Below are positions 5,766 to 44,470 of a DNA stretch of 64,000 bases, piece by piece. Below the pieces are notes generated by a model. That model did not search any database and was not told the origin of the DNA. It worked only from the letters and a program-made list of their open reading frames with translations. The DNA lies in sequence record LR756504.1. One strand, given 5' to 3'. Both the position numbers and the translations under genes were made by a program. Positions within the stretch are counted from its first letter, which is position 1. Each line of letters begins with the position of its first letter.

Positions 5766-6454
5766 TATTTACTTAGAATTTTATCAATCAATCCATAACC
5801 TAATGCTTCTTTAGCATCTAACCATTTATCTCTATCACAATCTCTCCATACCTTCTTAAATGGTTGTTTTGTGTTATCTGCTAATGTTTGTACTAATTCT
5901 CTCTTAATTTTTTTAATTTCTTTAGCTTCAATTTCTATATCAGATGCTTGTCCCCAAGTTCCACCAAGAGGTTGGTGTATCATAACTCTACTTCTACTAA
6001 GTGAACATCTTTTTCCTTCTGTACCATGACTTAAAATTACAGCAGCCATAGAAGCTGCTAATCCTGTACAAACAGTTGCTACATCAGTTTCAACTAAATC
6101 CATTACATCGAGAATGGAATTACCATCATAAACAGAACCACCTGGGCTATTAATGTAAAGTTTAATATCAGCCGTTTTATCTATAGATGTTAAATAAAGA
6201 AATTGTGCGGATATAACATTTGCAACATAATCATCAATTTCAGTTCCTAAAAAAATAATTCTATCCATCATTAATCTCGAAAAGACATCCATTATAGCAA
6301 TATTTAAATTTCTCTCTTCTACTATAGCAGGTGTTAAAGATGCTTGTGGAAATAGTTTTTTATATTTATCTAATGTGGTGGAAGGTACACCTTTAGATTT
6401 AGCAAATAGTGCAAAGTCTTTATCTAAATTCATAGTTTTTTCTATTTTTTTCAT
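5765..6454 (-). CDS. clpP: ATP-dependent Clp protease proteolytic subunit
   Basis: EER...MDVFSRLMMDRIIFLG, YINSPGGSV, AASMAAVIL, MIHQPLGG, CDRD motifs; Bacteroidota-like N-terminus. Confidence 0.96.
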   Translation of the reverse strand: MKKIEKTMNLDKDFALFAKSKGVPSTTLDKYKKLFPQASLTPAIVEERNLNIAIMDVFSRLMMDRIIFLGTEIDDYVANVISAQFLYLTSIDKTADIKLYINSPGGSVYDGNSILDVMDLVETDVATVCTGLAASMAAVILSHGTEGKRCSLSRSRVMIHQPLGGTWGQASDIEIEAKEIKKIKRELVQTLADNTKQPFKKVWRDCDRDKWLDAKEALGYGLIDKILSK

Positions 6455-6579
6455 AGTTTATATGAATAATTCTTATTTAGTTTAATCTATAACAATGTAA
6501 TTATTGATAATTTTTGATAATTTTTAAAACATTTGGTTTTTAAAAACGTAGAATGGTTAAATTATTGAATATTTTAGTT

Positions 6580-7629
6580 ATGAGCGAAAAAATAAATCCT
6601 GACGTAAAGAAAAAAATTGATAACATATTTGATGATGATAATACTGATAATCAAGTTGTTACTGTAAAAGAAGAAGCTATATCATCAGTAATACCTACTG
6701 ATACTAAATCTAAAGCATCTAAATTTTTAGATGATGTTGAGGATGAAGAACCTAAGAAAGCTGAGAAAAAAATTGATACTACGCCAATTAAACAAAGAAT
6801 TAAAGAACTTTATATACAATGCTTAGAATCTGCTAAAGTAAAAGATAAAGAAGGTATTTTATCAACATATGTAGAGGATTTGTATAATCCCGATACTACA
6901 AAACTCGATGATGGAAACTTACTTTTAAATTTATTAGTATTATCTCGTTTACAGGAATTAAATATTATTGATTTTTATTTTGATGATAATATGAAAAATC
7001 ATTCATCTACTGACTATCAATTAGATTTAAAGTGGTATGAGAAAATATTAGAGCAACCTGTAGAAGAACAAGCTAAATATGTTCATATTCTTGAAAGCAA
7101 TTTTAAATTGAAGTTCTATAAGAATATGTTTGAATCAATTTTGAAGTCTGCTGATAAAATGGCATACAATCAGAATAAGGTTAAAATGAAAAATGTGTGG
7201 AAGTTTATTGAAGATGAAACATCCACAGATTTCGATATTGAAGAATATTTTATTCAATTTATCGAAGATAAAACATTAGATGGTTCTGTTATAATGGTTA
7301 CACCAGATTTAACACCTTACTTCAAATTTGAAACCAAAAATGATGAAGAGTATGCAGAAAAACCTTATATAAAACTTGTCGGTAAATGGAAAAATAGATT
7401 CATTTATGAAATTGATACAAACCAAGTGGCATATCTTAAGGGTTTTAAACGTGGTGCGTTCTTTATTAAAGAAGGTAATAGATACGTAGTTAATCCTACT
7501 AGGCCACTAGTTTATTTTAATACTGTAAAAAATCCATTTGTTAATAATCCAATATTGTTGTTGTTTGCATCATTAGATTTTAATTTCTATACATCTGCTA
7601 CAACTTTCTTGAGAGTAGAAGATATGTAA
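6580..7629 (+). CDS. Hypothetical protein
   Basis: About 350-aa ORF; ATG at 6580 preferred over the track start at 6553. Confidence 0.8.
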   Translation: MSEKINPDVKKKIDNIFDDDNTDNQVVTVKEEAISSVIPTDTKSKASKFLDDVEDEEPKKAEKKIDTTPIKQRIKELYIQCLESAKVKDKEGILSTYVEDLYNPDTTKLDDGNLLLNLLVLSRLQELNIIDFYFDDNMKNHSSTDYQLDLKWYEKILEQPVEEQAKYVHILESNFKLKFYKNMFESILKSADKMAYNQNKVKMKNVWKFIEDETSTDFDIEEYFIQFIEDKTLDGSVIMVTPDLTPYFKFETKNDEEYAEKPYIKLVGKWKNRFIYEIDTNQVAYLKGFKRGAFFIKEGNRYVVNPTRPLVYFNTVKNPFVNNPILLLFASLDFNFYTSATTFLRVEDM

Positions 7630-8585: not shown

Positions 8586-9248
8586 ATGAAGATTAAATAC
8601 CCAAGAAGTTTTCACATTCCATACTCAGAAAATTGTACTACAGATGATAAAATGTGTAAATCTGATGCACATTTCGAAAATGAAGTAGTTGTTGGAACTA
8701 TAAAAATGGATGGTGAAAATACAACAATATACAACGATTATATTCATGCTAGATCATTATCATCGAATATGGATACGGAAGACCGTAGATGGATAGATAC
8801 ATTAAGACTTTTAAAAATTCGAGGTAATATATCAGAAACTCAAAGAATTGTTGGTGAAAATTTATTTTATAAACATACTTGTAATTATAATAGTTTATTG
8901 GATTTTTTTTATATGTTTTCTTTATGGGATGGTGATGTGTGTTTAAGTTGGGAAGAAACTAAAAATATTGCAAATAAGTTAAATTTGGTTACTGTACCAG
9001 AATTTTATTATGGTATTTATGATAAAGATAAAATATTAAAAGATTTTGATAATTACATAAAAAATTCTTCTGATGATGTTGAAGGATTTGTTATTAGAAA
9101 AGCTGACAGTTTTAATATTAATGATTTTAGTAATAATTTAAACAAATTTGTTAGAAAAACGTTTATTATACCACAAAATCACTGGAGACATAGTAAAAAA
9201 GAATTTAATAAATCTATTGATGGTGTAAATCCTTGGGAAAAATTATGA
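8586..9248 (+). CDS. RNA ligase (Rnl2-like / ATP-dependent nucleotidyltransferase family)
   Basis: KYPRSFH.P, KMDGEN (motif I), GENL, FSLWD, EGFVIR, KFVR. Confidence 0.85.
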   Translation: MKIKYPRSFHIPYSENCTTDDKMCKSDAHFENEVVVGTIKMDGENTTIYNDYIHARSLSSNMDTEDRRWIDTLRLLKIRGNISETQRIVGENLFYKHTCNYNSLLDFFYMFSLWDGDVCLSWEETKNIANKLNLVTVPEFYYGIYDKDKILKDFDNYIKNSSDDVEGFVIRKADSFNINDFSNNLNKFVRKTFIIPQNHWRHSKKEFNKSIDGVNPWEKL

Positions 9249-9724
9249 AATATAGAGTAAAGCAAGATGTAAGAAAAGGAAGATTTTATCCACAAATAAG
9301 AATTTTAGGTTTGTGGTTATATTTTAGCTATGATAATTCTATTATAATAGCTAAAACAAAAAATGCTTATTATACGGATAGTGTGGAGACATCGTGGGCG
9401 TGCGTAAATGTTCATAAGCATCATAAGGGAACTAATGGAACTACATATGAATATTTACCCAATATGCTCGGATTTAGACTTAAAAAGGTAACTAAAAATG
9501 GTAATATTAAATATCATGCGCAAAAAAGATTTATCTTTATATGGTATAGATTTGGTAGAAATAATGATATAAATTATGAAAGACATGTACACTATAGTGC
9601 CCAAAGTGGATGGGATTATATTATAAGATTAGATACACTATTTAAAACACCAAAGCCGAAAAAAGTACTTTACCATTACCCAGAAAAAACAAGAAAAGAA
9701 AAAATTAAATCTTTAAAGGTATGA
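9245..9724 (+). CDS. Hypothetical protein with internally duplicated module and C-terminal RxxKI tag
   Basis: KYRVKQ..RFYPQ.R.LGLW and FRLKKV..KYHAQKR.IFIW repeats; ends RKEKIKSLKV. Confidence 0.7.
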   Translation: MKYRVKQDVRKGRFYPQIRILGLWLYFSYDNSIIIAKTKNAYYTDSVETSWACVNVHKHHKGTNGTTYEYLPNMLGFRLKKVTKNGNIKYHAQKRFIFIWYRFGRNNDINYERHVHYSAQSGWDYIIRLDTLFKTPKPKKVLYHYPEKTRKEKIKSLKV

Positions 9725-9909
9725 AATATTTAAAATGGATTTTACTACTTTCAGCTATTTTGCTTATCATTATAAGTATATGTTCAATATTAAAAATTAA
9801 AAGTGTTATAGCATTTGGTTTGAGTATTGTTATAGTTGTTGCATTATTAGTTTTGAATTTTTGTAATTTCAAATACATTAATGATATTAAAAAGAAATAT
9901 GATTTATAA
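9721..9909 (+). CDS. Small two-helix membrane protein
   Basis: Two hydrophobic stretches; ATGA overlap with upstream gene. Confidence 0.7.
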   Translation: MKYLKWILLLSAILLIIISICSILKIKSVIAFGLSIVIVVALLVLNFCNFKYINDIKKKYDL

Positions 9910-9939
9910 GCGAATTAATAATTTTACTAAAAGTTTAAA

Positions 9940-10057
9940 GGATGCCTATTACGTCTAATAGGCAGAGCCTTATGGTCATATCTTACTCCTATGTAATTTG
10001 ATTCACCGAAAAAGTCCTCAGCAAGTGTGCATCTTCATCATAGGTAGAGAGGCATCT
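9940..10057. ncRNA. Candidate structured RNA element between convergent genes
   Basis: GC-richer than flanks; 9-bp hairpin 9943-9964, GATGCCT/AGGCATC long-range pair, CCTATG/CATAGG pair. Confidence 0.35.
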
Positions 10058-10103
10058 AAGGAACTAATAATAAATAAAGCTATTCTAATATTTTTTCTAT
10101 TTT

Positions 10104-10904
10104 CTATTTTCTTCCTAGTCCAAAGTAAGCTCTTAATTTAGATTCATAATCCTTAACTTTTAGTATCTTTGGTTCATCAATTGATGGTGGAATATAAACT
10201 AATGCGCAAGAATCAACGTGAATATCATATTCAGAAAGAATTAATTTATATAAATTTAATTGAATTGAATACTTATTTAATTCATTCTCCCATTCATCAT
10301 GAAATGGTGCTTTAAGTTTTTGCCAACATTTATCAGCATCAGTGGACATTTTAGCATTAGTTTTATAATCTAAAATCATCAATTTACCATTTCTCATAAA
10401 AAGTCCATCAATAGTTCCAGCCAATTTTAATTTTCTTGAAAATATTCTTAATTCTTGTGCAATTGGAATTACATTAGTTAATTTTGATTCATATAATGTT
10501 TCAAATTTATCAATCCTTCTTAGGGTTTCTAAGTCTTCGAAATTATCTCTTGTGATTGTTGATCCAGGTGTAAATTTATTTTCAATATAAAAATGAACAT
10601 TTGTACCCATATCACAAGCAGTATCCCTCTTTTTATCCCATTCGCCAATAATTTCTTTTATTGTCAAATCTAAATCAGGATCATTATCTTTTATTTGCTC
10701 ACGCGAAATACCTCTTTTCTCAGCTATTCTATCTTTAGCTTTTCTCTTACTCCAATATTCAGCATCAAATGGTTCTGAGAAATTTTTAATAAAAGTAGTT
10801 ACTGATGTTAATTTCTCTTTTCCATATGTATAAGCATGTGCTTTTTCATCGAAAACAAAATTATCATCATTAAATATTTTTATTTTGTCTAAAATTTCTT
10901 GCAT
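10104..10904 (-). CDS. PD-(D/E)XK exonuclease (RecB/Cas4-like phage nuclease)
   Basis: SVTT, GTNVH.YIE, ELRIFS, AGTIDGL, ILDYKT, YSIQLNLY. Confidence 0.88.
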   Translation of the reverse strand: MQEILDKIKIFNDDNFVFDEKAHAYTYGKEKLTSVTTFIKNFSEPFDAEYWSKRKAKDRIAEKRGISREQIKDNDPDLDLTIKEIIGEWDKKRDTACDMGTNVHFYIENKFTPGSTITRDNFEDLETLRRIDKFETLYESKLTNVIPIAQELRIFSRKLKLAGTIDGLFMRNGKLMILDYKTNAKMSTDADKCWQKLKAPFHDEWENELNKYSIQLNLYKLILSEYDIHVDSCALVYIPPSIDEPKILKVKDYESKLRAYFGLGRK

Positions 10905-13306: not shown

Positions 13307-13353
13307 TTAATATCAGAGTTTTTATATATAGAAAAAAGTTATAATAAGTTTTA

Positions 13354-15672
13354 ATGAAATATTTAAAAAGATTTGATTTTTTATTTGAAGGTTTAATTTT
13401 AGAAAAAGTTGTAGTTTGTAGTGATGAATTGGTTAAAATCCTTAAAACTATGGAAAGCCCTGTAGCTAAAACTCTGTTAAAAGCACAGGAAGAGAGTGCT
13501 GATGTAGTTGATAATTCTTATATAGATTTTGATAAGGAAGATGGTTTAGTTTCTTATTTACCTGCTAATAGAGAAATTAACAGAGATAATGGTCAAGAAA
13601 TAGCAGACAAATGGAATGTTAGAGGTAGACAAAAGATTTCTATTGGTAAATTAGCGAAAGCTATAGTAATTAAATTAGGTGTACATTATTCAGAATCAGA
13701 AATAGAGAAATTTGTAAATGAATATAAATCCAAGCAAAAACCAACAAGATTTGTTTTAGCAAAAGACGAAGCATCCATAAAGAAATATTACTACGAAGAT
13801 AATTACGATAGATTTAGTATGGTTGGTGATTCATCTCTTATAAATAGTTGTATGAGAGGCACTAATGCACAAGATTTCTTCTCTATTTACTACAATAATG
13901 ATACACCATGCAAACTTTTAGTTTTATTGAATAATGAAAACAATAAAGTTATGGGTAGAGCCATTATATGGGATAATGTTATCGATAATAATGATAATGG
14001 TAAAATATTTACATTTATGGATAGAATATACACCATTGATTCAGCATTAGAAGAATCATTTAAAGCATATGCAAGAGAAATAGGGTGGTGGTATAAAGAA
14101 ACTCAAAGTAGTGGGAGATATGCTATAACTGATGGTAAAACATCTAAAGAGTTACCGCTTTTAAAAGTTTCTGTACCTAATATAGAATGGGATGCTGTAG
14201 AAATGCCTTATATGGATACGTTTGCATATTTAGGATATGAGTATATAGATGGTAAATTTCAACCATTTTTATATAATGAAGTTTATAAAAGTAGTAAATT
14301 ACATAACTGGTATCTTAAATTTCGTTCTCAATCTGGAGGTAATGAAGAAAAAATCTATTATAACAGAAATAAAGATGTTTTTGGAAATAGAATAATTAAT
14401 CCCAATGCAAAAGTATTAAAAGAATATGATGATTATGTGTGGATGATAGATGACGATAATGATGATTTATTGGATCCAAATAATTTTGAAACTGTTTACA
14501 TATTATTTAAAAAAAATCGAAATGGTATCGGGGATGCTATAGTTGCTTTAGGTATTGATAATACAAATGATGAAGCCGATGGTTTATGTGTGGTAGAAAC
14601 TGCAATATACGAAAATAGATTTGGAGATTACATATCATTTAGTTCAGAAATAGCTGACATAGTTAAACAACAAAATAATCTAATAAAGTACAAAGATTGG
14701 GAATATGATGGTAACTTTAAAATACCAGGACATATAAAAGATCCTGAAATTCTTAATACAATTTTAAATCATACTGATAAACAATGGATAGAGCATGGTA
14801 TAGCTTTATATGAAGCTACCAATAAAGAATGTGCGGAAGTAATATTAAAATATAAACCAGATATTCTAAAAAATAATAATGTTTCCAACTTACTTAGTTT
14901 AATGAAATATGGCTTGATTGAAAATAATAATATTGGCGATAAAATAAAAAAATGTGGTGTATCCGATTTAGTGTATAAAGATGATTTTTTATGGGTTTCA
15001 TTTGAAGAGTATATTCAATTAATTTTTATGTTTAATGATAGTGATAAAGTTTATCACAGAATATCATCAAGAAAATATGCAAAAGATATTTTAAGCGGGA
15101 GTTGGGATTATGGTTATATAGAATATTCTTTAAATGATATTGATTTTTCTACAATAAATGAAAAAAATAGAGAAACTATATTAACATTAATGGAAAATGA
15201 TATTGCTATTATTAAGTCTTGGTTCGAAGAAAATGAACTTGTGTGGAATGATAATTGGAAAGATATATTTAGAAATAATATTTCTGGTAAATTGATACGG
15301 CTAGTTCTTAAAACTGATTATAAAGATATTAGTGATGCTATAAAATATTCTATGAATAATGCACAAGAAAATGCTGATTTAGAACAAGCGTATGATAAAA
15401 TCACAGATAGACTTGTTGATATTACTACTATTGTAATGGATGATGTAGAAAGTGGGCCAAGATTTCAATTTAAATACGAATGGTTAATAGCGGTAAAATA
15501 CGATGATAAAAAAATTCTTAATGCTATAAAACGTTATTATGAAGATTGGGAAGATTTTAATATAGATGAACCACGATTTACTACAGTTAATATTCCGCAT
15601 CGTGGATGGCAGGGTGATGTATCTAATGCTCAATTTAATGAGGAATTACAGTATAGATTAGGAGAAATTTAA
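13354..15672 (+). CDS. Large protein with capsid-targeting-like N-terminus and SCM...RAIIW...DRIY (PcfJ/GNAT-like) domain
   Basis: MKYLKRFDFLFE; NSCMRG, VMGRAIIW, FMDRIY, PYMDTF motifs; fold call is inference. Confidence 0.5.
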   Translation: MKYLKRFDFLFEGLILEKVVVCSDELVKILKTMESPVAKTLLKAQEESADVVDNSYIDFDKEDGLVSYLPANREINRDNGQEIADKWNVRGRQKISIGKLAKAIVIKLGVHYSESEIEKFVNEYKSKQKPTRFVLAKDEASIKKYYYEDNYDRFSMVGDSSLINSCMRGTNAQDFFSIYYNNDTPCKLLVLLNNENNKVMGRAIIWDNVIDNNDNGKIFTFMDRIYTIDSALEESFKAYAREIGWWYKETQSSGRYAITDGKTSKELPLLKVSVPNIEWDAVEMPYMDTFAYLGYEYIDGKFQPFLYNEVYKSSKLHNWYLKFRSQSGGNEEKIYYNRNKDVFGNRIINPNAKVLKEYDDYVWMIDDDNDDLLDPNNFETVYILFKKNRNGIGDAIVALGIDNTNDEADGLCVVETAIYENRFGDYISFSSEIADIVKQQNNLIKYKDWEYDGNFKIPGHIKDPEILNTILNHTDKQWIEHGIALYEATNKECAEVILKYKPDILKNNNVSNLLSLMKYGLIENNNIGDKIKKCGVSDLVYKDDFLWVSFEEYIQLIFMFNDSDKVYHRISSRKYAKDILSGSWDYGYIEYSLNDIDFSTINEKNRETILTLMENDIAIIKSWFEENELVWNDNWKDIFRNNISGKLIRLVLKTDYKDISDAIKYSMNNAQENADLEQAYDKITDRLVDITTIVMDDVESGPRFQFKYEWLIAVKYDDKKILNAIKRYYEDWEDFNIDEPRFTTVNIPHRGWQGDVSNAQFNEELQYRLGEI

Positions 15673-23999: not shown

Positions 24000-24021
24000 N
24001 NNNNNNNNNNNNNNNNNNNNN
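24000..24021. other. Assembly gap (22 N)
   Basis: Run of N right after the tRNA cluster. Confidence 1.
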
Positions 24022-34566: not shown

Positions 34567-35514
34567 TTAATATCTCGGTTCTATTACGCTTGGTTTATAT
34601 TTAATGTCATTATCACATAATATATTCAAACATTCTACTAAATCTGCTAAATGTAGAGATAGTACACTATTATAATCATCTTTTCTATAACCACCGAATA
34701 GTGAAAGAGCTAAAGGAAATGGCTTTTTTAATTCTTCTTCAATACTTTTAACAAAGTTGTATACTATTTTAGAACATTCTATCCATTGTTCAGTATTTAA
34801 TTGTGTACCATAGTCGTCCCAAAAATGGGAGTCAGCACCATGACAGAATACTAAATAATGTGTTTTTCCTTGAATTATTCGTTCTCTTAATTTTTCTAAT
34901 CTTTCCTGTAAATCAATAATGTAATATTTACTATGATATTGAGGATTAATATTACATTCTGTAGGAACAGCTTCATTTAAATCAGGTGCAAAATACCTAC
35001 TGTCTTCTAAACTATTTCCAAAATGCCCATCTAAATCGAGATATGCACCAGATAATCCAAGTTCTCTATAAATTTTTAGTGATGCTATTACTTGTCCTGA
35101 AAATGTACAAAATCCCATTCCTTCATCAGGTGTAGCATGATGGAAACCAGCAGTATTACTAAATGATACTTCATCTGGATTTTTTATAGAATTTAAAATA
35201 GCATTATATAAACTCGCATTAGTATATCTTACCGAATCTGCAAATTGAGCATTCCACTTCAAACCATTTGATGATGCTTGTGGTTCTATACCATTAAAAA
35301 AATTGTCAACATATTTTTCGAAGTGTGCTGTATAAAAAACTTCTTTTTCGAAAGGTTCAAACTCCTTGATGTCGAAATATTCCAATAATCCGTTTTTATG
35401 GATGTATTCTATAATTTTTTTTGGTTTTAATGGTGATTTGGAAATATTTGGCACATTTTCGTCCATTAAAACCATTCTTTCATCATAAAATGTTGATATT
35501 GTCTTTTTTCTCAT
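34567..35514 (-). CDS. Histone-deacetylase-family (Zn-dependent) deacylase
   Basis: GFHHA, GFCTFSG, LDLDGHFGN, GADSH..D, GGY. Confidence 0.88.
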   Translation of the reverse strand: MRKKTISTFYDERMVLMDENVPNISKSPLKPKKIIEYIHKNGLLEYFDIKEFEPFEKEVFYTAHFEKYVDNFFNGIEPQASSNGLKWNAQFADSVRYTNASLYNAILNSIKNPDEVSFSNTAGFHHATPDEGMGFCTFSGQVIASLKIYRELGLSGAYLDLDGHFGNSLEDSRYFAPDLNEAVPTECNINPQYHSKYYIIDLQERLEKLRERIIQGKTHYLVFCHGADSHFWDDYGTQLNTEQWIECSKIVYNFVKSIEEELKKPFPLALSLFGGYRKDDYNSVLSLHLADLVECLNILCDNDIKYKPSVIEPRY

Positions 35515-36142: not shown

Positions 36143-36760
36143 TTATTTTTTGTATTTTTTATCAAAAGCTGACCTATCTGTTAAATCACTTTCAAAAATA
36201 ACATCAAATTTAGAGCAACACCATATATCAGCAGGGGTTGTTCTAGCTATAGTACCTGTGAAAAATGTATTGTAAGCATTAGCAATAACTTCTGAACATT
36301 CAATTGTTCTTTTTCCGTCTTCGTTATTTTTACCTGTCCACCAACCTTTACCAAATACTTTTTTAGTTAATAGATATATTACTTGTGTGAATAATAGTGT
36401 ACCATAAGCATATGGTTTATTAACTATATCAGTAATATTATTATACACCGTTTCAACAGTATATCCAAATTCTGGTTTAGCTCTTAAAACTGCTATTTCT
36501 CTAACATCACCTAATTCTGTCATATATTTATCCAATCGTTTAGTGACAACAAAACCATTAGCTACAGCTTCAGCTATGTATAAAGTATCTAAATAGTTAA
36601 CAACTAAAGCAGCATGATTATAATAACATTTAGTCAACATTCTAATAACTGGTGAAGGTATATCACTTATAGATGATATTTTATTTTTGTGTACCAAAAT
36701 AACATCTGTTTCATTAAACGTTATGTTTTGTCCTTTGTAAGTAAATTGTTTAGTTATCAT
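36143..36760 (-). CDS. Permuted papain-like NlpC/P60 (YiiX/YebB-type) amidase
   Basis: YNHAALV, IAEA, KPY, late ECSEVIA (His before Cys). Confidence 0.8.
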   Translation of the reverse strand: MITKQFTYKGQNITFNETDVILVHKNKISSISDIPSPVIRMLTKCYYNHAALVVNYLDTLYIAEAVANGFVVTKRLDKYMTELGDVREIAVLRAKPEFGYTVETVYNNITDIVNKPYAYGTLLFTQVIYLLTKKVFGKGWWTGKNNEDGKRTIECSEVIANAYNTFFTGTIARTTPADIWCCSKFDVIFESDLTDRSAFDKKYKK

Positions 36761-36856: not shown

Positions 36857-37564
36857 ATGTATAGTTATATTGGAGTTGATTTATCGTTAACATCTGCTGC
36901 ATTAGTTATCAAAACTAATGGTGTATATCACTATCTTTCATATGTTAAAAATTTCAAATATGGGAAATGGACTAAGTTAATGAATTTTGTTAATATTACG
37001 AGTACAGAGTTTAAAATTAGTGATAATTATTCTACAAACGAAAACAATAAATTAATTGATTATGATAGAATAACTGATCAAATAATTTTTGATATTAAAA
37101 AAATAACAGGTGATGATAATATAATTTATAATATAGAAGGGTTTTCCTATAGCAGCGGTGGTAAAACATCTTCAATTATTGACATAGTAACATATACGAC
37201 TTTATTTAGAAGTAAAATGAAAAATATATTAAACGCAAAAATGAATGTTATATCACCATCAACTTTAAAAATGCAAGCTTGTTATTTAGTATATGGTGGT
37301 GAAATTAAAAAAAATAAAAGTGGTAATATTATTAAAATAATCACAAAAACATCAGATGGTATAAGTGGGGGCTCTATGAAAAAACATCAAATCTTTAAAG
37401 CTTTAAATGATTCGAATATTAATAATGATTTAACAAAATTTATTAGAGAAAATTTTAAAGAAATTTATAAAATGTCTTCTATTATAAAACCATTAGATGA
37501 TATAAATGATGCTTTTTTCTTATTACTATTTTTAGAATCAAATATTGTGGATATTATAAAATAA
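36857..37564 (+). CDS. RuvC-like Holliday junction resolvase
   Basis: IGVDLSLTS, IEGFSY, SPSTLK, DDINDAF. Confidence 0.8.
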   Translation: MYSYIGVDLSLTSAALVIKTNGVYHYLSYVKNFKYGKWTKLMNFVNITSTEFKISDNYSTNENNKLIDYDRITDQIIFDIKKITGDDNIIYNIEGFSYSSGGKTSSIIDIVTYTTLFRSKMKNILNAKMNVISPSTLKMQACYLVYGGEIKKNKSGNIIKIITKTSDGISGGSMKKHQIFKALNDSNINNDLTKFIRENFKEIYKMSSIIKPLDDINDAFFLLLFLESNIVDIIK

Positions 37565-37596
37565 AAAATAATATATAGTCAATATTACAATTTATT

Positions 37597-39210
37597 ATGA
37601 AACGTATATTCAATTTCACACAATTTATAAAGGAAGCATTAAAGGATGAGATTCCAAAACATCAACAAGACATATTAAAGAATAACATTTTACAGTATGA
37701 TCCAGACGATGATGACTATTCAGTTTATAATATAGATGCATATGATATATTAGATACTGATGTTCCAAAGAAAACAGATAATATCACCGATGGCTTATGG
37801 AAACTTTCAGAGGAAGATAAAGATAAGGCAATTCAACTAATGTTTAACATAAACATATCATCTGTAGAAAACTCTTTAAAAGAATTTAAACCATCTGAAA
37901 GATTTTTAGATATAGTTAAGCAATCCTATATACACGATAATGAAATTAATATAATTAAACCTACCATTAAAGATATAAAAATGTTATATGGTAATAATTT
38001 TAGGATGCTGAGTATAAGTGAAACCAAAGGTGATAGAAAAGTAATACGTGATAAAAGTGGTATACCTCTAAGAAAAGATGGTGAGTTATCATATGAAGAT
38101 AAATTACCAGGTGAACCAGTATTTACAGATAATAAATCTAACATTAATAGCTTATTTATGGGTTATCACAATTGTTATGGTGGTGATATTTCAAATCCAT
38201 ATATTTTAGAAGCTTTCAAAAATATCTATTCAAGGATTAATGATATTACTAGAAATAATTTCGATATTGATATTTTAGGTAAATTTGATTTAGAATTATA
38301 CATTTCATCAAAAGCAGAAGATATGTTAAATATGTCTTTATCAGCATTTTACGATTCTTGTCAAAATATGTATAATGGTGGATATAGACATCAATTACCT
38401 TCAAATGTGTTTGATAAAAATTGTAAAATTTGTTTTTTAAGATTTAATACACCATTTATAGATATAGGGAATAATATAATACCATTCACACCATTTTCAA
38501 GATGTCTTATAAGAAATATTAAAGGAAAATTATATTTTGAATCAGCTTATCCTAAAATGTATGATATGAATGAGTTTCATCATGGAATGATAGAAAAATA
38601 TACTTCTATGAAAAATACTTATAAAGGTGATAGATATTTTTACAAAAATACAAAAGGATTAGCTACACCTTATATGGACACATTAGGTATAGAAGAAATA
38701 AAATCAGCATTCAATGATACTAAAGCAATTTTATTATCAAAAGAGCTTAATTTAGATATAGAATATATTGTTAAAGATAAGTCATGTGAATATACCTATG
38801 TTGATGAAGAGTCTAAAACATTCTATATTTTTGATATTACAAAAGATGAAACTGTAATTATTGATAAAATGTTTTCTTCGTTGAAGAATAATTTCACTGA
38901 AATTTATCCTGTAGATGATTGGGCACATTATATTGATATGGATAGATTTAGAGGTGAATTTTCTACAACTGTTAATGAAACAGCTAAAAAGTATAATATG
39001 GATAGAAAAGATGTTGAAGCAGAAGACGTTTATAAATATCTCAGGTCAATATTGGGTAGAAGTAATCTTATAGGTTATTTTTATGATTTTATTGATAGAA
39101 AATTTTATGATAAAATACTTTTAGATTGGAAAAATCAAATAGTCAGGGTTTTGGGTGGGAAAAACAAAGAAATTCGAGTAGGTGATTACTTAATTATTCA
39201 GAAATCTTAA
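37597..39210 (+). CDS. Paralog 1 of tandem trio (MLNMS...DSCQN domain), capsid-targeting-like start
   Basis: MKRIFNFTQFIKE|ALKD; SSKAEDMLNMS..FYDSCQN..SRCLIRNIKG. Confidence 0.8.
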   Translation: MKRIFNFTQFIKEALKDEIPKHQQDILKNNILQYDPDDDDYSVYNIDAYDILDTDVPKKTDNITDGLWKLSEEDKDKAIQLMFNINISSVENSLKEFKPSERFLDIVKQSYIHDNEINIIKPTIKDIKMLYGNNFRMLSISETKGDRKVIRDKSGIPLRKDGELSYEDKLPGEPVFTDNKSNINSLFMGYHNCYGGDISNPYILEAFKNIYSRINDITRNNFDIDILGKFDLELYISSKAEDMLNMSLSAFYDSCQNMYNGGYRHQLPSNVFDKNCKICFLRFNTPFIDIGNNIIPFTPFSRCLIRNIKGKLYFESAYPKMYDMNEFHHGMIEKYTSMKNTYKGDRYFYKNTKGLATPYMDTLGIEEIKSAFNDTKAILLSKELNLDIEYIVKDKSCEYTYVDEESKTFYIFDITKDETVIIDKMFSSLKNNFTEIYPVDDWAHYIDMDRFRGEFSTTVNETAKKYNMDRKDVEAEDVYKYLRSILGRSNLIGYFYDFIDRKFYDKILLDWKNQIVRVLGGKNKEIRVGDYLIIQKS

Positions 39211-39228
39211 ACTTTTTTTAAAAAAATG

Positions 39229-39258
39229 TTGGTTTTTAAAACTTTTATGGTATATTTG
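39229..39258 (+). promoter_or_regulatory. Bacteroidota housekeeping-sigma promoter for paralog 2
   Basis: TTG 39229-39231, 19-nt spacer, TATATTTG 39251-39258. Confidence 0.65.
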
Positions 39259-39287
39259 TATAAATGTATTTGAAAAAGCAATAACAT

Positions 39288-40922
39288 ATGTCGTTAAAAG
39301 ACCTCTTACCAAAACATCAATTAGAATTGATGGATAAAAAAATAGGTAAAAAATACCTAAATCTTGAATTACCCACAAAGGCTGAAAACATTATTGAGGG
39401 TGAATGGACATTAACTAAAGAGGAAAAGGATGGTGTTATCCAACTTCTTTTTGGTGTTGACGTTAAGGGTATTGATAAAGTATTGGCTAAATTTAAACCA
39501 ACTGAGCATTTTTTAGAAATTTTTGAGCTTTCAAGAACTACTAAAGACGCAATTAATCTTTTAAAACCATCAATTATTGATATTAAAATGCTTAATTCTA
39601 ACAGTTTTAAGCTTATTAATGTTGGTGAAACAAAAGGTGATAAAATGATTCTTAGAAATGATAACGGTCATCCTATTACGGAAGGATTATTGAAAATGCC
39701 TAAAAAAGTAGATAAAAAGAAAGGTGAAATTGTATTTTCAAACAATAAATCTAACTTCAATGCTTTCTTAGAGTCTTATAATTCTGCATGTGACGCTAAA
39801 ATAGAAAATCCTTTCATGAGTAGAGAGTTTACAGAAGTTCTTTCTTATGTAAAACAGGGTAATTTCGACTTTGAGCTATTTACCAAATTCGACTTACAGC
39901 TTTACATATCATCTAAGCCAGAAGATATGTTGAATATGTCAATTTCCAAATTTTATGATTCATGTCAAAATCTTTATAGTGGTGCTCAAAATAATTGTCT
40001 TGCGCCAAATTTGTTCGATAAGAACTGTAAAATTGCTTATTTAAAATTTAATACACCATATACCGATAGAAATGGAAATGTTATGCCCTTTACATCTTTT
40101 ACAAGATGCATAGTTAGAAACATTAAAGGTAGAATTTATTTTGATATGGTATACCCTAAATTTTCAAATGATTTGAGATTATTTGTACACTCAATCATTG
40201 AAAAATATACAGGAATGAAGAATTCTTTTGCTGATAAAGAATCAAAGACTTATTATTATACCGAAGTTGGATTAGGTCGTCCTTATTTTGATAGTGTAAT
40301 CGGTGTTCCTATTAAATTCAATCCTGATGCTTACAAAGACATAAAACTTCAAGCATTAGCTAAATTCTTAAAAACTGAAGCTGATTATATACTCGAAGCT
40401 GATAAGAATGTTTATGGAACTGACCAAGGAGACTTTCTTGTGTTATCTATCGAAGAAGCTTTAAATGCAACTAAACATTATATTACAGAAGAAATGATTT
40501 ATAAGCAAGATATTTACAAAAAATATGTTGATATCGAAAAATTCTTCGAAGAAAATAAAAGTAAATGTTTGGTTAACTATAGTGGATCATGTGACTTTGA
40601 TGAAATTACTAAATGGGCAGAAGAACCACCAACACCTAAAAAAGAAAAAAAGAAAAAAAGAGATTTAAATGAAGATGATGATGAAAGGCGTGGTTCAGAT
40701 TTAGGATTTGATCCTAAAAAATTTGGTGGAAATAATAAACATAATATCACCAAACACAATCTTTATCGTTTTATGAAACCGTATTTGGATTCAAAATTCT
40801 GGGAAGAAAGATTAACCGATGAAAGTATTTCAAGTAAAAGAAATAAACTTTCAGTTGATGAAAATGAAATTAACATGGGTGACTATTTCGCATACAAACA
40901 AGAAATAAAGAAGAGAAATTAA
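39288..40922 (+). CDS. Paralog 2 of tandem trio, lacks the N-terminal propeptide
   Basis: Starts MSLKDLLPKH, aligned with the post-Glu residue of paralogs 1 and 3; same conserved core. Confidence 0.8.
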   Translation: MSLKDLLPKHQLELMDKKIGKKYLNLELPTKAENIIEGEWTLTKEEKDGVIQLLFGVDVKGIDKVLAKFKPTEHFLEIFELSRTTKDAINLLKPSIIDIKMLNSNSFKLINVGETKGDKMILRNDNGHPITEGLLKMPKKVDKKKGEIVFSNNKSNFNAFLESYNSACDAKIENPFMSREFTEVLSYVKQGNFDFELFTKFDLQLYISSKPEDMLNMSISKFYDSCQNLYSGAQNNCLAPNLFDKNCKIAYLKFNTPYTDRNGNVMPFTSFTRCIVRNIKGRIYFDMVYPKFSNDLRLFVHSIIEKYTGMKNSFADKESKTYYYTEVGLGRPYFDSVIGVPIKFNPDAYKDIKLQALAKFLKTEADYILEADKNVYGTDQGDFLVLSIEEALNATKHYITEEMIYKQDIYKKYVDIEKFFEENKSKCLVNYSGSCDFDEITKWAEEPPTPKKEKKKKRDLNEDDDERRGSDLGFDPKKFGGNNKHNITKHNLYRFMKPYLDSKFWEERLTDESISSKRNKLSVDENEINMGDYFAYKQEIKKRN

Positions 40923-40971
40923 TTTATATTTATTCAATATATTATTTATATATCATAAAAACTTATTTTCA

Positions 40972-42699
40972 ATGAAGAATAGTAAAAATATTAAATCTCT
41001 TGAAGAATTTCAAGTAAAAGAAGCACTAAAAGATCAAATTCCTGATCACCATAAAAAGATTTTAACCAAGAGGATTGGTAAAAAATATCTTGATATGGAA
41101 GTTCCTGATAAAGCCGAAAACTTAACCGAGGGTGAATGGATATTGACCAAAGAAGAGAAAGATGAAGCAATACAATCGATGTTTATGGTGAACGTTAAAA
41201 AAATTGAATTGCTTCTCGAAGGATGGAAACCATCAACTAAATTTATCAACACTATAAAAGAAGCTAAAACCATAGATGGTGTTATTGATATCGAAAAACC
41301 ATCTTTGCTTGATTTAAAATTAATGACTTCTAATATTTATAAATTAATTAGCATTGGAGAAACAAGAGGTAATAGAATAATGATAAAAGGAGATAATGGA
41401 AAACCATTATTAGGTGAAGACAATCTACCAACATATAGAAATAAAGAACCTGGTGAAATTATTCTATCAAATAACATATCCAACTTCAATGGTTTTTATG
41501 AAAGTTATATGTTAGCTTTCCCTGGAGAGAATGATATGAAAAACCCATTTATTAATCCAGCCTTTACTAATATTCTTTCAATGGCTGTTGATAGAAATTT
41601 TGACATTGATTTATTTTCTAAATACGACTTACAGCTTTACATATCTTCTAAGTCAGAAGATATGTTAAATATGTCCATATCAAAATTTTATGATTCGTGT
41701 CAAAATCTTTATAGTGGATCACATAATAAGCATTTACCAGCAAATTTATTTGATTCAAACGTTAAAATTGCTTATCTAAAATTCAATACACCGTTCACAG
41801 ATAAAAAGAAAAACATTGTACCTTTTACTATATTTTCAAGATGTTTAATTAGAAATGTTAAAGGTCAAATATTCTTTGATATGGTATATCCTGGTGTTTT
41901 AAAACAATTCTTCCATAAAATTGTTACGAAATATACGGGAATGAAGAATGAATATAAAGGTGGAAATTATTTCTTTACTAATATTGGTTTGGGCGCACCG
42001 TATATGGATACTTTAGCTGCGAGAAGTATTAAAACTAATCCAAATGCTACTAAAGATAGTAGATTAATGGCACTCGCTACTTATCTAAACCATACACCAG
42101 AAGATATTTTCGAAATTGAAAAAAACATATATGTCACTGATAAAGGAACATTCAAAGTAATGACTGAGGAAGAAGCTAACAAAGCTACTTATAGTTATTT
42201 AACCGATGAAATGGTTTATAGACAAGATATTTATAAAAATTATGTAAATGTTCAAGCATTTTATGATGCTAATATAGAAACATCAGAATTAAAACCTGAC
42301 ACAAAAACAAGAAATAGAAAGTCTACAGAAAAACTTTTGAAATGGTATAACGGGTCTGTTAATTTTGATGAAATTGCTAAATGGGCAGATGAACAGCCAT
42401 TCAAAAAAGTTAAGAAGAAAGATGGTACTGTGGAAAGAGTTCCTGTACCTGATAAGAAAAATAGAATTACTAAACACAATCTCTATCGTGCAATGAAACC
42501 ATTTATTGATCCTATATTCTTTGCTGAAAGAACTACACCTGAACAAATTGCAAATAAACGTAATAAACTTGCTGTTGACGATATTCAAATACCTTTAACA
42601 GATAATTTATTCGCATATAGAATACAAGATAGGCAATTACCTGGTGATGAATATGACTATGATTATGATGACGAAGACGGTAATGAAGACGATGGCTGA
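40972..42699 (+). CDS. Paralog 3 of tandem trio, capsid-targeting-like start
   Basis: MKNSKNIKSLEEFQVKE|ALKD; same core; acidic tail. Confidence 0.8.
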   Translation: MKNSKNIKSLEEFQVKEALKDQIPDHHKKILTKRIGKKYLDMEVPDKAENLTEGEWILTKEEKDEAIQSMFMVNVKKIELLLEGWKPSTKFINTIKEAKTIDGVIDIEKPSLLDLKLMTSNIYKLISIGETRGNRIMIKGDNGKPLLGEDNLPTYRNKEPGEIILSNNISNFNGFYESYMLAFPGENDMKNPFINPAFTNILSMAVDRNFDIDLFSKYDLQLYISSKSEDMLNMSISKFYDSCQNLYSGSHNKHLPANLFDSNVKIAYLKFNTPFTDKKKNIVPFTIFSRCLIRNVKGQIFFDMVYPGVLKQFFHKIVTKYTGMKNEYKGGNYFFTNIGLGAPYMDTLAARSIKTNPNATKDSRLMALATYLNHTPEDIFEIEKNIYVTDKGTFKVMTEEEANKATYSYLTDEMVYRQDIYKNYVNVQAFYDANIETSELKPDTKTRNRKSTEKLLKWYNGSVNFDEIAKWADEQPFKKVKKKDGTVERVPVPDKKNRITKHNLYRAMKPFIDPIFFAERTTPEQIANKRNKLAVDDIQIPLTDNLFAYRIQDRQLPGDEYDYDYDDEDGNEDDG

Positions 42700-42711
42700 A
42701 TGTAAATATTT

Positions 42712-42740
42712 AAAGACTTGTAAATTTACAAGTCTTTTTT
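42712..42740 (+). terminator. Intrinsic terminator
   Basis: AAAGACTTGTAAA/TTTACAAGTCTTT-TTT. Confidence 0.7.
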
Positions 42741-44059: not shown

Positions 44060-44470
44060 TTAACATAATTCTACACCAATTCCACGTTTAAAATTTAAAA
44101 TAAATGTATTGTATTTTATATTGTTTACAATAGTTTCTATAAAAGATAAACTCTTAAAATCATTATCTATTTTTAAAATTACTTCTTCATCAACTTTATC
44201 ATATCGGGGATAAATATGAGAATATAATTCATATTCACTAAATTGTTCATCACCCCAATCTTTATTATTTTCAACCATTATACCTTCAATTAATATACCG
44301 TTAACTTCAAAATATCTTCTTAATTCATTATAGTTTACTTTAATATATGTATCATAACCACCATACCCATTAATAATTTCAAATACTGAATCGAGCGTAT
44401 CATCTTCCTCCTCTTCATCTTCATCATCCCATTCTTCTGAGAAATTTTCGTATAATTTTAAGTACTTCAT
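44060..44470 (-). CDS. Hypothetical protein with capsid-targeting-like and acidic N-terminus
   Basis: MKYLKLYENFSEEWDDEDEE; AATATATA upstream. Confidence 0.75.
   Translation of the reverse strand: MKYLKLYENFSEEWDDEDEEEEDDTLDSVFEIINGYGGYDTYIKVNYNELRRYFEVNGILIEGIMVENNKDWGDEQFSEYELYSHIYPRYDKVDEEVILKIDNDFKSLSFIETIVNNIKYNTFILNFKRGIGVELC

Follow-up and report, generated by a model that had tools for sequence, protein, structure and literature searches.

Tandem paralogs of an uncultured megaphage differ in leader peptide and upstream motif, as might be expected of packaged and early forms of the same protein

The 64,000-nt stretch of DNA analyzed here (the window) is 100% identical to LR756504.1, the genome of an uncultured phage of 636,363 bp (window position p = LR position p + 286,060), and contains three tandem paralogous genes, here called copies 1, 2, and 3 of the trio. 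Copy 2 is itself 100% identical to LR756504.1, and its relatives in other phage records were found only in LR745206.1 and LR756502.1, at ~30% identity. These records are the phages larger than 630 kb described by Al-Shayeb et al. (2020), for all of which replication in Bacteroidetes was predicted (PMC7162821). The features of the trio region, in window coordinates, are as follows.

37570..37577, plus strand: AATATATA, promoter-like motif 26-27 nt 5' of the copy 1 ATG; candidate late promoter
37597..39210, plus strand: copy 1, leader-bearing paralog of 537 amino acids (aa); conserved core at aa 225-373, with residues C255, R302, R306, E315, Y318, Y359, and D361
37597..37635, plus strand: leader of copy 1, 13 aa, MKRIFNFTQFIKE, ending I-K-E and followed by ALKD; candidate capsid-targeting propeptide
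39228..39231, plus strand: GTTG, a 3-of-4 match to a Bacteroidota -33 TTTG, with a 19-nt spacer to the copy 2 -7 element
39251..39258, plus strand: TATATTTG, Bacteroidota-type -7 element (TAnnTTTG), 37 nt 5' of the copy 2 ATG
39282..39284, plus strand: in-frame TAA, two codons 5' of the copy 2 ATG
39288..40922, plus strand: copy 2, leaderless paralog of 544 aa, N-terminus MSLKD
39873..40337, plus strand: conserved core domain of copy 2, aa 196-350
40946..40953, plus strand: TTATATAT, near-match to the ATATATA core (one base short), 5' of copy 3
40972..42699, plus strand: copy 3, leader-bearing paralog of 575 aa with an acidic C-terminal tail
40972..41022, plus strand: leader of copy 3, 17 aa, MKNSKNIKSLEEFQVKE, ending V-K-E and followed by ALKD
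42712..42737, plus strand: terminator-like hairpin 3' of copy 3, an 11-bp stem followed by a T run

The initial annotation of this region had described three tandem paralogs of 540-575 aa; the arrangement was confirmed, with the lengths corrected to 537-575 aa. Identity to copy 1 is 40-41% for both copy 2 and copy 3. The shared block SSK.EDMLNMS..FYDSCQN...RC.IRN.KG described there is present in all three copies, where it was seen as YISSK.EDMLNMS.S.FYDSCQN ... F.RC..RN.KG. We also found the N-termini as described, a leader followed by ALKD in copies 1 and 3 and MSLKD in copy 2, and the upstream motifs at the positions claimed, with the motif of copy 3 one base short of the ATATATA core. A start further upstream, restoring a propeptide to copy 2, had been named as the finding that would overturn the comparison; the in-frame TAA at 39282-39284 excludes such a longer N-terminus. 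Removal of the initiator methionine by methionine aminopeptidase is allowed before Ser, Ala, and Pro, and the N-terminus of copy 2 after this removal would be at the same position as that of copies 1 and 3 after the predicted cleavage. In the AlphaFold2 model of copy 2 this N-terminus is ordered, with residues 1-24 at a predicted local distance difference test score (pLDDT) of 96-97.

On balance, we consider it probable that the same proteins are delivered in two formats, a packaged and injected form with a leader and an early form without a leader, made from a host-type promoter. In the first format (copies 1 and 3), the gene would be transcribed together with the head genes from an ATATATA-type promoter, and the leader of 12-17 aa (M-K-x-[I/L]-K-x-[F/Y]-x-x-F-[I/L]-x-E) would attach its protein to the core of the prohead, by analogy with the capsid-targeting sequence (CTS) of phage T4. 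A gp21-type prohead protease would then cut the leader after the Glu, and the trimmed protein, beginning ALKD, would stay in the capsid and be ejected with the DNA. In the second format (copy 2), the protein would lack the leader, begin at the residue following the predicted cut, and be made early in the cytoplasm by the host RNA polymerase, with no passage through the capsid; the Bacteroidota-type -33/-7 promoter before copy 2 suggests that the host enzyme can make it at that stage. We infer targeting, cleavage, packaging, injection, and timing. The interpretation given in the initial annotation is partly supported, with each component open to a test in silico having come out in its favor.

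The leader recurs throughout the genome. Using the pattern MKx[IL]Kx[FY]xxF[IL]xE, with the expectation taken from shuffled N-termini, we identified it on 61 of the 904 open reading frames (ORFs) of the 636-kb genome, compared with 12.7 +/- 3.2 in the shuffles. Genome-wide statistics here and below were computed on these 904 ORFs of LR756504.1, with 22 positions masked that match a run of 22 N at window 24000-24021. In an IMG/VR entry of 288,572 bp, the N-terminal pattern M-[K]-x-[I/L/V]-K-x-[F/Y]-x-x-[F]-...-E was found on 29 of 328 ORFs, compared with 4.7 expected; this record, classed with inverted terminal repeats, is 100% identical to part of LR756504.1 and looks like a partial or differently assembled copy of it. 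The leader is common to unrelated ORFs, two paralog families, and one protein with an endolysin domain. Two residues before the Glu (P3), L, I, F, or V was found in 44 of the 61 ORFs, and hydrophobic residues recur at positions 4, 7, and 10/11. Synonymous codon use in the leader equals that of the rest of the genome, and the constraint thus acts on the peptide and not on a nucleotide element. Among 103 family members representing the trio family, 88 carry a leader of 9-22 aa and seven are leaderless, and the column of the leader Glu is at least 90% conserved. The leader of copy 3 is an atypical longer form that is kept in its orthologue P0006.

A protease that could process such a leader is encoded by the same genome. 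The ORF at LR756504.1 186557-187495 (minus strand) matches phrog_207, the family containing T4 gp21 (E=6.3e-35), and adjoins the gene for a gp23-type major capsid protein (phrog_138, E=1e-19); a gp20-type portal is also present (phrog_213, E=1.6e-60). Between the protease and capsid genes lies an ORF rich in [I/L/V]-x-E sites which, by analogy, may resemble a T4-type scaffold. The treatment of the propeptide as a separable unit in the initial annotation is thus supported by a genome-wide, T4-CTS-like leader ending [L/I/V/F]-x-E and by an encoded protease of the gp21 family.

In the T4 record AF158101, IPII and IPIII begin with MKTYQEFIAE followed by A, and IPI begins with MKTFKEF. The first 10 residues of the T4 CTS suffice for packaging, residues 4 and 7 serving in targeting and residues 8 and 10 directing processing; cleavage by gp21 and by its homologues in giant phages follows a Glu, and a propeptide of seven residues is removed from Alt (PMC9026906). 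The T4 internal proteins are diverse, with the CTS as their sole common part (PMC3012670). The megaphage leader resembles the CTS of IPI, IPII, IPIII, and Alt in the initial M-K, an aromatic or aliphatic residue at position 4, Phe at position 7, the terminal [I/L]-x-Glu, the Ala or Ser that often follows the cut, and its presence on otherwise unrelated proteins. The resemblance extends to the gp21-family protease, the T4-type capsid and portal, and the hypervariable, paralogous cargo genes. In contrast to the 10-aa CTS, the megaphage leader has 12-17 aa (about three more) and an extra hydrophobic position, and whereas the CTS is found on a handful of T4 proteins, the leader, known from sequence alone, occurs on ~50-60 ORFs. 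The cargo families also differ in having no T4 counterparts, and the host differs in belonging to the Bacteroidota.

Several other leader-bearing or leader-like ORFs were observed. The endolysin-domain protein (557 aa, MKYLKKYGNFSINE-A..., with ATATATA upstream) is encoded outside the window at LR756504.1 241456-243129 (plus strand), which corresponds to 135304-136977 of the IMG/VR record. Its endolysin-like domain (phrog_2649, E=7e-10) on a leader-bearing protein fits a virion-borne cell-wall hydrolase, for which we regard it as a candidate. Several ORFs, among them those at window 44060-44470 (minus strand) and LR756504.1 603575-604252 (minus strand), have a leader that runs straight into a very acidic stretch, e.g., MKYLKLYENFSE-EWDDEDEEEEDD; as pure speculation, these might be cargo of a DNA-mimic-like or T4 internal-peptide-like kind. 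A peptidase family of eight members (e.g., LR756504.1 206229-207425, 238784-241384, and 565502-567604; phrog_4191 for the five members scanned) lies mostly behind TAnnTTTG, and the N-terminus of most members, MDFKKTF..LTQW, mimics the leader pattern, usually without the Glu. Eight further leader-bearing ORFs of the window gave no match when scanned against PHROG.

The presence of the leader is coupled to the motif found upstream. ATATATA lies within 60 nt upstream of 39 of the 61 leader ORFs, compared with 137 of the 843 others (odds ratio 9.1, p=2.5e-15), while TAnnTTTG precedes three of the 61 and 110 of the 843, and TATATTTG precedes none of the 61. Six close paralogs of the trio family are encoded in the genome, three leader-bearing and three leaderless. 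All three leader-bearing paralogs have ATATATA upstream, or the one-off variant in the case of copy 3. The leaderless paralogs beginning MSLKD and MPLRD have TATATTTG at -37 and -38, and the third, MALRD, follows MPLRD on that strand at a distance of 44 nt. Leaderless paralogs start exactly at the residue that follows the leader Glu of their counterparts. The trio is kept in two related phage contigs, L012 and L014, where the copy 1 orthologues have a leader and ATATATA, and the copy 2 orthologues have TATATTTG. The third copy of L014 has lost its leader (MQLRD) and has TATATTTG at -27. Genes flanking the trio in these contigs are not conserved with the window; in L012 a Peptidase_M23 gene (6214-6681) follows the trio, and in L014 a gene for an ATP-dependent DNA ligase (9004-10311) lies ~4.5 kb from it.

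The same pairing was observed in a second family, represented in the window by the following features.

13324..13330, plus strand: ATATATA motif, 30 nt 5' of the 772-aa ORF
13354..15672, plus strand: leader-bearing ORF of 772 aa, N-terminus MKYLKRFDFLFE-G...

With 14 paralogs, this is the largest paralog family of the genome. Its leader forms (MKYLKRFDFLFE-G... and ...LLQE-KEIILSD...) have ATATATA upstream, and its leaderless forms, which start M-P-K-Q-IILSD..., have TATATTTG. Taking both families together (21 paralogs), seven leader genes have a strict ATATATA, in addition to the near-match of copy 3, and four leaderless genes have TA..TTTG (five with the divergent member included); none is crossed, and by our own arithmetic Fisher's test on [[7,0],[0,4]] gives p=0.003. 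Each of the remaining paralogs follows another gene at 1-3 nt, has an ambiguous start, or has neither motif. The initial annotation had noted a resemblance between the core of the trio and the 772-aa ORF. Its family has the invariant motifs SCM, R, MDRIY, and PYMD, which are collinear with SCQ, R, FD..Y, and PYMD of the trio, and profile-profile comparison with hhalign aligned the R...D..Y block over 34 columns at 62% probability (E=7.4e-5). Against the single 772-aa sequence, the trio profile gave no relation (0.5% probability), the local match appearing only with the family profile (A5). The resemblance is thus plausible, and remote homology of the two families is likely, though not proven.

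Bacteroidota promoters have a -33 TTTG and a -7 TAnnTTTG element. Of the TAnnTTTG sites found upstream of genes, 50 of 89 have TTTG ~20 nt (14-27 nt) further upstream, compared with 70 of 903 in the background (8%), which agrees, as does the Bacteroidetes host prediction, with the Bacteroidota promoter assigned to copy 2 in the initial annotation. At copy 2 the -7 element TATATTTG, 37 nt before the ATG, is exact; the promoter, predicted from sequence, departs from the sigma-A architecture in its -33 element, which is only GTTG and weak on its own, and which is TTTG in the copy 2 orthologues of L012 and L014. Among the annotated genes of the TAnnTTTG class are those for an ATP-dependent DNA ligase and for a tRNA nucleotidyltransferase. 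A tail sheath gene was considered as a counter-example in this class and was rejected, its start being called too far downstream and the motif lying in probable coding sequence. A scan for E. coli-type sigma-70 promoters returned 46 sites compared with 43.4 expected and is uninformative for this host.

Octamers of the ATATATA type are enriched 13-18x within 60 nt before start codons, and the octamer TTATATAT of copy 3 is itself enriched 9.9x upstream of genes. The motif lies at a median distance of 27 nt from the start (interquartile range 25-30) and is flanked by T-rich sequence upstream and A-rich sequence downstream. It is found at -28 of the major capsid gene and at -32 of the portal gene, so that the motif of the leader copies belongs to the class that precedes structural genes, in line with the late promoter that had been proposed. 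We therefore regard ATATATA as a candidate late promoter of the class preceding the capsid and portal genes. Beside the portal gene, a 134-aa ORF at LR756504.1 192391-192795 (plus strand) has a match (E=1.3e-9) to phrog_234, the late-sigma family of T4 gp55; since phrog_234 also matches eight of 14 control genomes, the ORF is only a candidate late sigma. No match to a second late-sigma family, phrog_12791, was found in LR756504.1. The two separable promoter classes amount to a first regulatory map for the clade, including direct support for a Bacteroidota host.

The observations that weigh against delivery in two formats concern the leader, the upstream motifs, and the core. At the position after the leader Glu (P1'), A and S occur nine times each, and K, E, and N are also common. 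The leader pattern gave false positives, namely the peptidase family with its own N-terminus and a family of 99 aa, and missed copy 3; the true count is roughly 50-60 ORFs. Copy 2 has an orthologue, P0002, with a 15-aa basic extension without Glu, and copy 3 has one, P0007, with an extension of ~70 aa; N-terminal variation is thus not strictly two-state. The leader could instead be a sorting or interaction signal, e.g., an uncleaved amphipathic helix, which targets the protein to a membrane, a phage-made compartment, a chaperone, or a phage ATP-dependent protease for timed turnover, the paralogs then differing in localization or stability. The hydrophobic periodicity is typical of an amphipathic helix, the P1' residue is frequently K, E, or N instead of a small residue, and an FtsH/Lon-like ATP-dependent protease is encoded (phrog_4871). 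However, the leader is closely similar to the T4 CTS in its pattern and terminal [L/I]-x-E (PMC9026906), and a gp21-type protease, of a kind that cuts after Glu, is encoded beside the capsid gene. In addition, leaderless paralogs start right after the Glu, which equivalence of the mature proteins would predict, and leader-bearing genes appear to share the regulation of the capsid and portal genes. We therefore find a sorting signal unlikely and favor a capsid-targeting propeptide.

Concerning the upstream motifs, that of copy 3 is one base off the consensus, and the label "late" rests on two structural genes and the candidate gp55-like sigma. Among public sequencing runs searched for the region, we identified one DNA run, its likely source, and no RNA run. 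A terminator scan of the trio region detected none between the three genes and a single hairpin after copy 3. The trio is therefore possibly one transcription unit with internal promoters, in which read-through could blur the separation of early and late expression; copy 3 could also be transcribed from the promoter of copy 2, and copy 2 from that of copy 1. If the two motifs did not stand for early and late at all, ATATATA being a middle or constitutive promoter or a translation-initiation context, read-through could equalize expression of the trio, which would then be a natural experiment on the leader only and not on timing. The lack of terminators between the copies would fit this, as would ATATATA before non-structural genes (a peptidase and an ATP-dependent protease) and the possibility that TAnnTTTG is a chance match in coding sequence, as at the tail sheath. 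Against it, the spacing of 25-30 nt and the T-rich and A-rich flanks of ATATATA are promoter-like and the motif precedes the capsid and portal genes, while TAnnTTTG has a matching -33 TTTG in 56% of cases compared with 8% in the background and precedes genes such as those for DNA ligase and tRNA nucleotidyltransferase. The two motif classes are, moreover, almost mutually exclusive with respect to the leader. It is thus quite improbable that the motifs lack a temporal meaning, and we retain the proposed assignment of a late and an early class.

A profile search of a library of predicted proteins from public genome and metagenome sequences identified 171 cluster representatives of the trio family (E <= 1e-3; clusters at 50% identity). 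In 103 aligned members, with a mean column identity of 13%, C226, R273, and Y333 (copy 2 numbering) are invariant, and S218, S220, S225, N241, F243, D244, N246, R277, D286, Y289, Y322, and D335 are nearly so. These residues are kept in all three copies, save for one D-to-E change in copy 1. The C-terminal parts differ among family members, and some appear leucine-rich-repeat-like by eye. Scans of the trio and neighboring ORFs against PHROG and NCBIfam gave no match for the trio, and no precomputed Pfam domain was found in 37 homologues of copy 2 or in 37 homologues of the 772-aa ORF. Profile searches against PDB sequences returned noise only (E >= 0.03).

AlphaFold2 with the family alignment gave a confident model of copy 2, with a pLDDT of 91.3 over its full length; the pLDDT of the core, at aa 196-350, was 92.8. 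Foldseek searches of the PDB with the whole model and with the core domain, a check proposed in the initial annotation, returned nothing at E <= 1e-3. In an exhaustive structural alignment of the core, almost all of the top 50 matches were chains of the GNAT superfamily (Z 4.3-6.0), many of them aligned over 90-119 residues, the best being 6yug_B (Z 6.0, 95 residues, root-mean-square deviation 3.7 Å). An Atlas shape search also had an Acetyltransf_1 cluster and an arginyl-tRNA transferase C-terminal cluster among its matches. Two findings on the core add to those that weigh against the proposal. All structural matches have Z < 8, below the level counted as specific, and the resemblance to GNAT is weak. 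In addition, GNAT motif A, Q/R-x-x-G-x-G/A, which lies between beta4 and alpha3 and binds acetyl-CoA, is absent in copy 2, where the strand at 282-289 and the helix at 294-308 are joined by P-K-F-S-N-D-L, which contains no Gly (family consensus YPxxM). Because the acetyl-CoA loop is absent, we term the modeled core weakly GNAT-like and do not file it as an acetyltransferase. It thus resembles the GNAT superfamily over 90-119 residues, and differs from it in the low Z of 4.3-6.0, the deviation of ~4 Å, the missing loop, the lack of a PDB sequence match, and the invariant Cys, which is not a GNAT hallmark. Of the earlier suggestion of a PcfJ/GNAT-like core, the GNAT part therefore has weak fold support, and membership in the PcfJ-like family (PF14284) found no support, with no Pfam match among the 74 homologues. 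The Atlas feature search had returned EcoRI_methylase (0.94), PcfJ (0.84-0.86, counted as leads only), and PBECR4; these leads are mutually discordant, with the top family marked as probably wrong, and were not adopted.

With no cofactor motif found in the core and the GNAT match weak, all members could be structural or assembly components of a very large head instead of enzymes, their conserved residues being structural and the leaderless copies being assembly factors or packaged by binding to leader-bearing relatives. Heads of giant phages contain paralog families of 2-20 members, some processed by a gp21-type protease (PMC5694885), and the nearest structural neighbors of the trio among viral models are uncharacterized jumbo-phage proteins, e.g., of Dickeya phage JA29 and Agrobacterium phage Atu_ph07 (E ~1e-5; BFVD). 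However, an invariant Cys, two Arg, Asp/Tyr, and Pro-Tyr-x-Asp at a mean identity of 13% look like an active or ligand site, and the variable, in part leucine-rich-repeat-like C-terminal domains fit a catalytic and a targeting module. The host-type promoter of the leaderless copies, furthermore, argues for a role before heads exist. A head component is thus clearly unlikely, and we favor an enzyme that is packaged in one format and made early in the other.

We infer that the core is an enzyme, and our best guess, at low confidence, is a transferase using the invariant Cys. With similarly low confidence, a transferase joined to a targeting module is suggested by the GNAT-like core, with its invariant Cys and pair of Arg, and by the variable C-terminal domains. 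The trio belongs to what is probably a phage-specific paralog superfamily, consisting of six close copies, one divergent copy, and, again probably, the 14-member sister family. Its core is defined by the conserved Cys, Arg, Asp-Tyr, and Pro-Tyr-x-Asp in a GNAT-like alpha/beta fold with variable C-terminal domains. With a confident fold and neither Pfam nor PHROG annotation, the trio family is a defined target for biochemistry.

Alt and ModA/ModB of T4 are among the known systems closest to this deployment. As proposed here for the trio, T4 uses paralogs of one activity in two ways. Alt is packaged, loses its propeptide, and is injected (PMC9026906). ModA and ModB are made early, as cytoplasmic proteins. 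The analogy, drawn in the initial annotation, applies to this logic of deployment and not to the proteins, which are not ADP-ribosyltransferases as those of T4 are: no ADP-ribosyltransferase structure was among the fold-search matches, and no PHROG or NCBIfam match was found. The trio differs also in its weakly GNAT-like fold, the tandem arrangement of the two formats, and the number of paralogs (21). With phiKZ and SPN3US, the megaphage shares a large size, a gp21-homologous protease cutting after Glu, and paralog families (PMC5694885). In contrast, the cleavage motif in those phages is A/S/G-x-E, their propeptides are often long, no systematic leaderless twins with a host promoter are described, and the trio has no detectable sequence homology to their families.

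Two ORFs close to the trio were also examined. Window 34567-35514 (minus strand), 2 kb from the trio, encodes 315 aa with the motifs GFHHA ... DLDGHFGN, which by eye resemble an amidohydrolase of the arginase/histone-deacetylase type; PHROG and NCBIfam scans gave no match for this ORF. Window 36143-36760 (minus strand) encodes 205 aa with a weak match to phrog_1128 (E=3.6e-6) and a match to the YiiX permuted papain-like family at E=0.007, far below the cutoff. Both ends of the genome (LR756504.1 1.5-28 kb and 624-630 kb) are densely arrayed with small tandem paralogs, in families of 4-7 members of 70-145 aa each.

Leaders, protease processing, and head paralog families are known already from T4, phiKZ, and SPN3US (PMC5694885). 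New are the occurrence of such a leader class in the largest phages, a protein superfamily that lacks annotation, and the regular coincidence of leader loss with a change of promoter. In the limited library searched, no paper was found that connects megaphages to capsid targeting or to propeptides. More tentatively, and as a possibility we would not yet call probable, a T4-like but distinct N-terminal zip code of the largest known phages may load ~50-60 proteins (~6% of the proteome), and the 21 paralogs (~6% of the genome) may be Cys-dependent GNAT-like enzymes with swappable C-terminal targeting domains. Each family would then be kept in matched injected and early versions, with gain or loss of a 13-aa leader and a swap of promoter acting as the evolutionary switch. 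If true, this would reveal a large unrecognized arsenal of host-takeover effectors and a portable packaging tag for Bacteroidota megaphages. Megaphages larger than 600 kb have no cultured representative, and the majority of their genes are without assigned function; a packaging leader would allow the capsid-borne proteins that enter first to be predicted from sequence only, among ~900. Paralogs with and without the leader point to an activity needed from the first seconds until early transcription takes over, and are the best candidates for host-takeover or anti-defense effectors.

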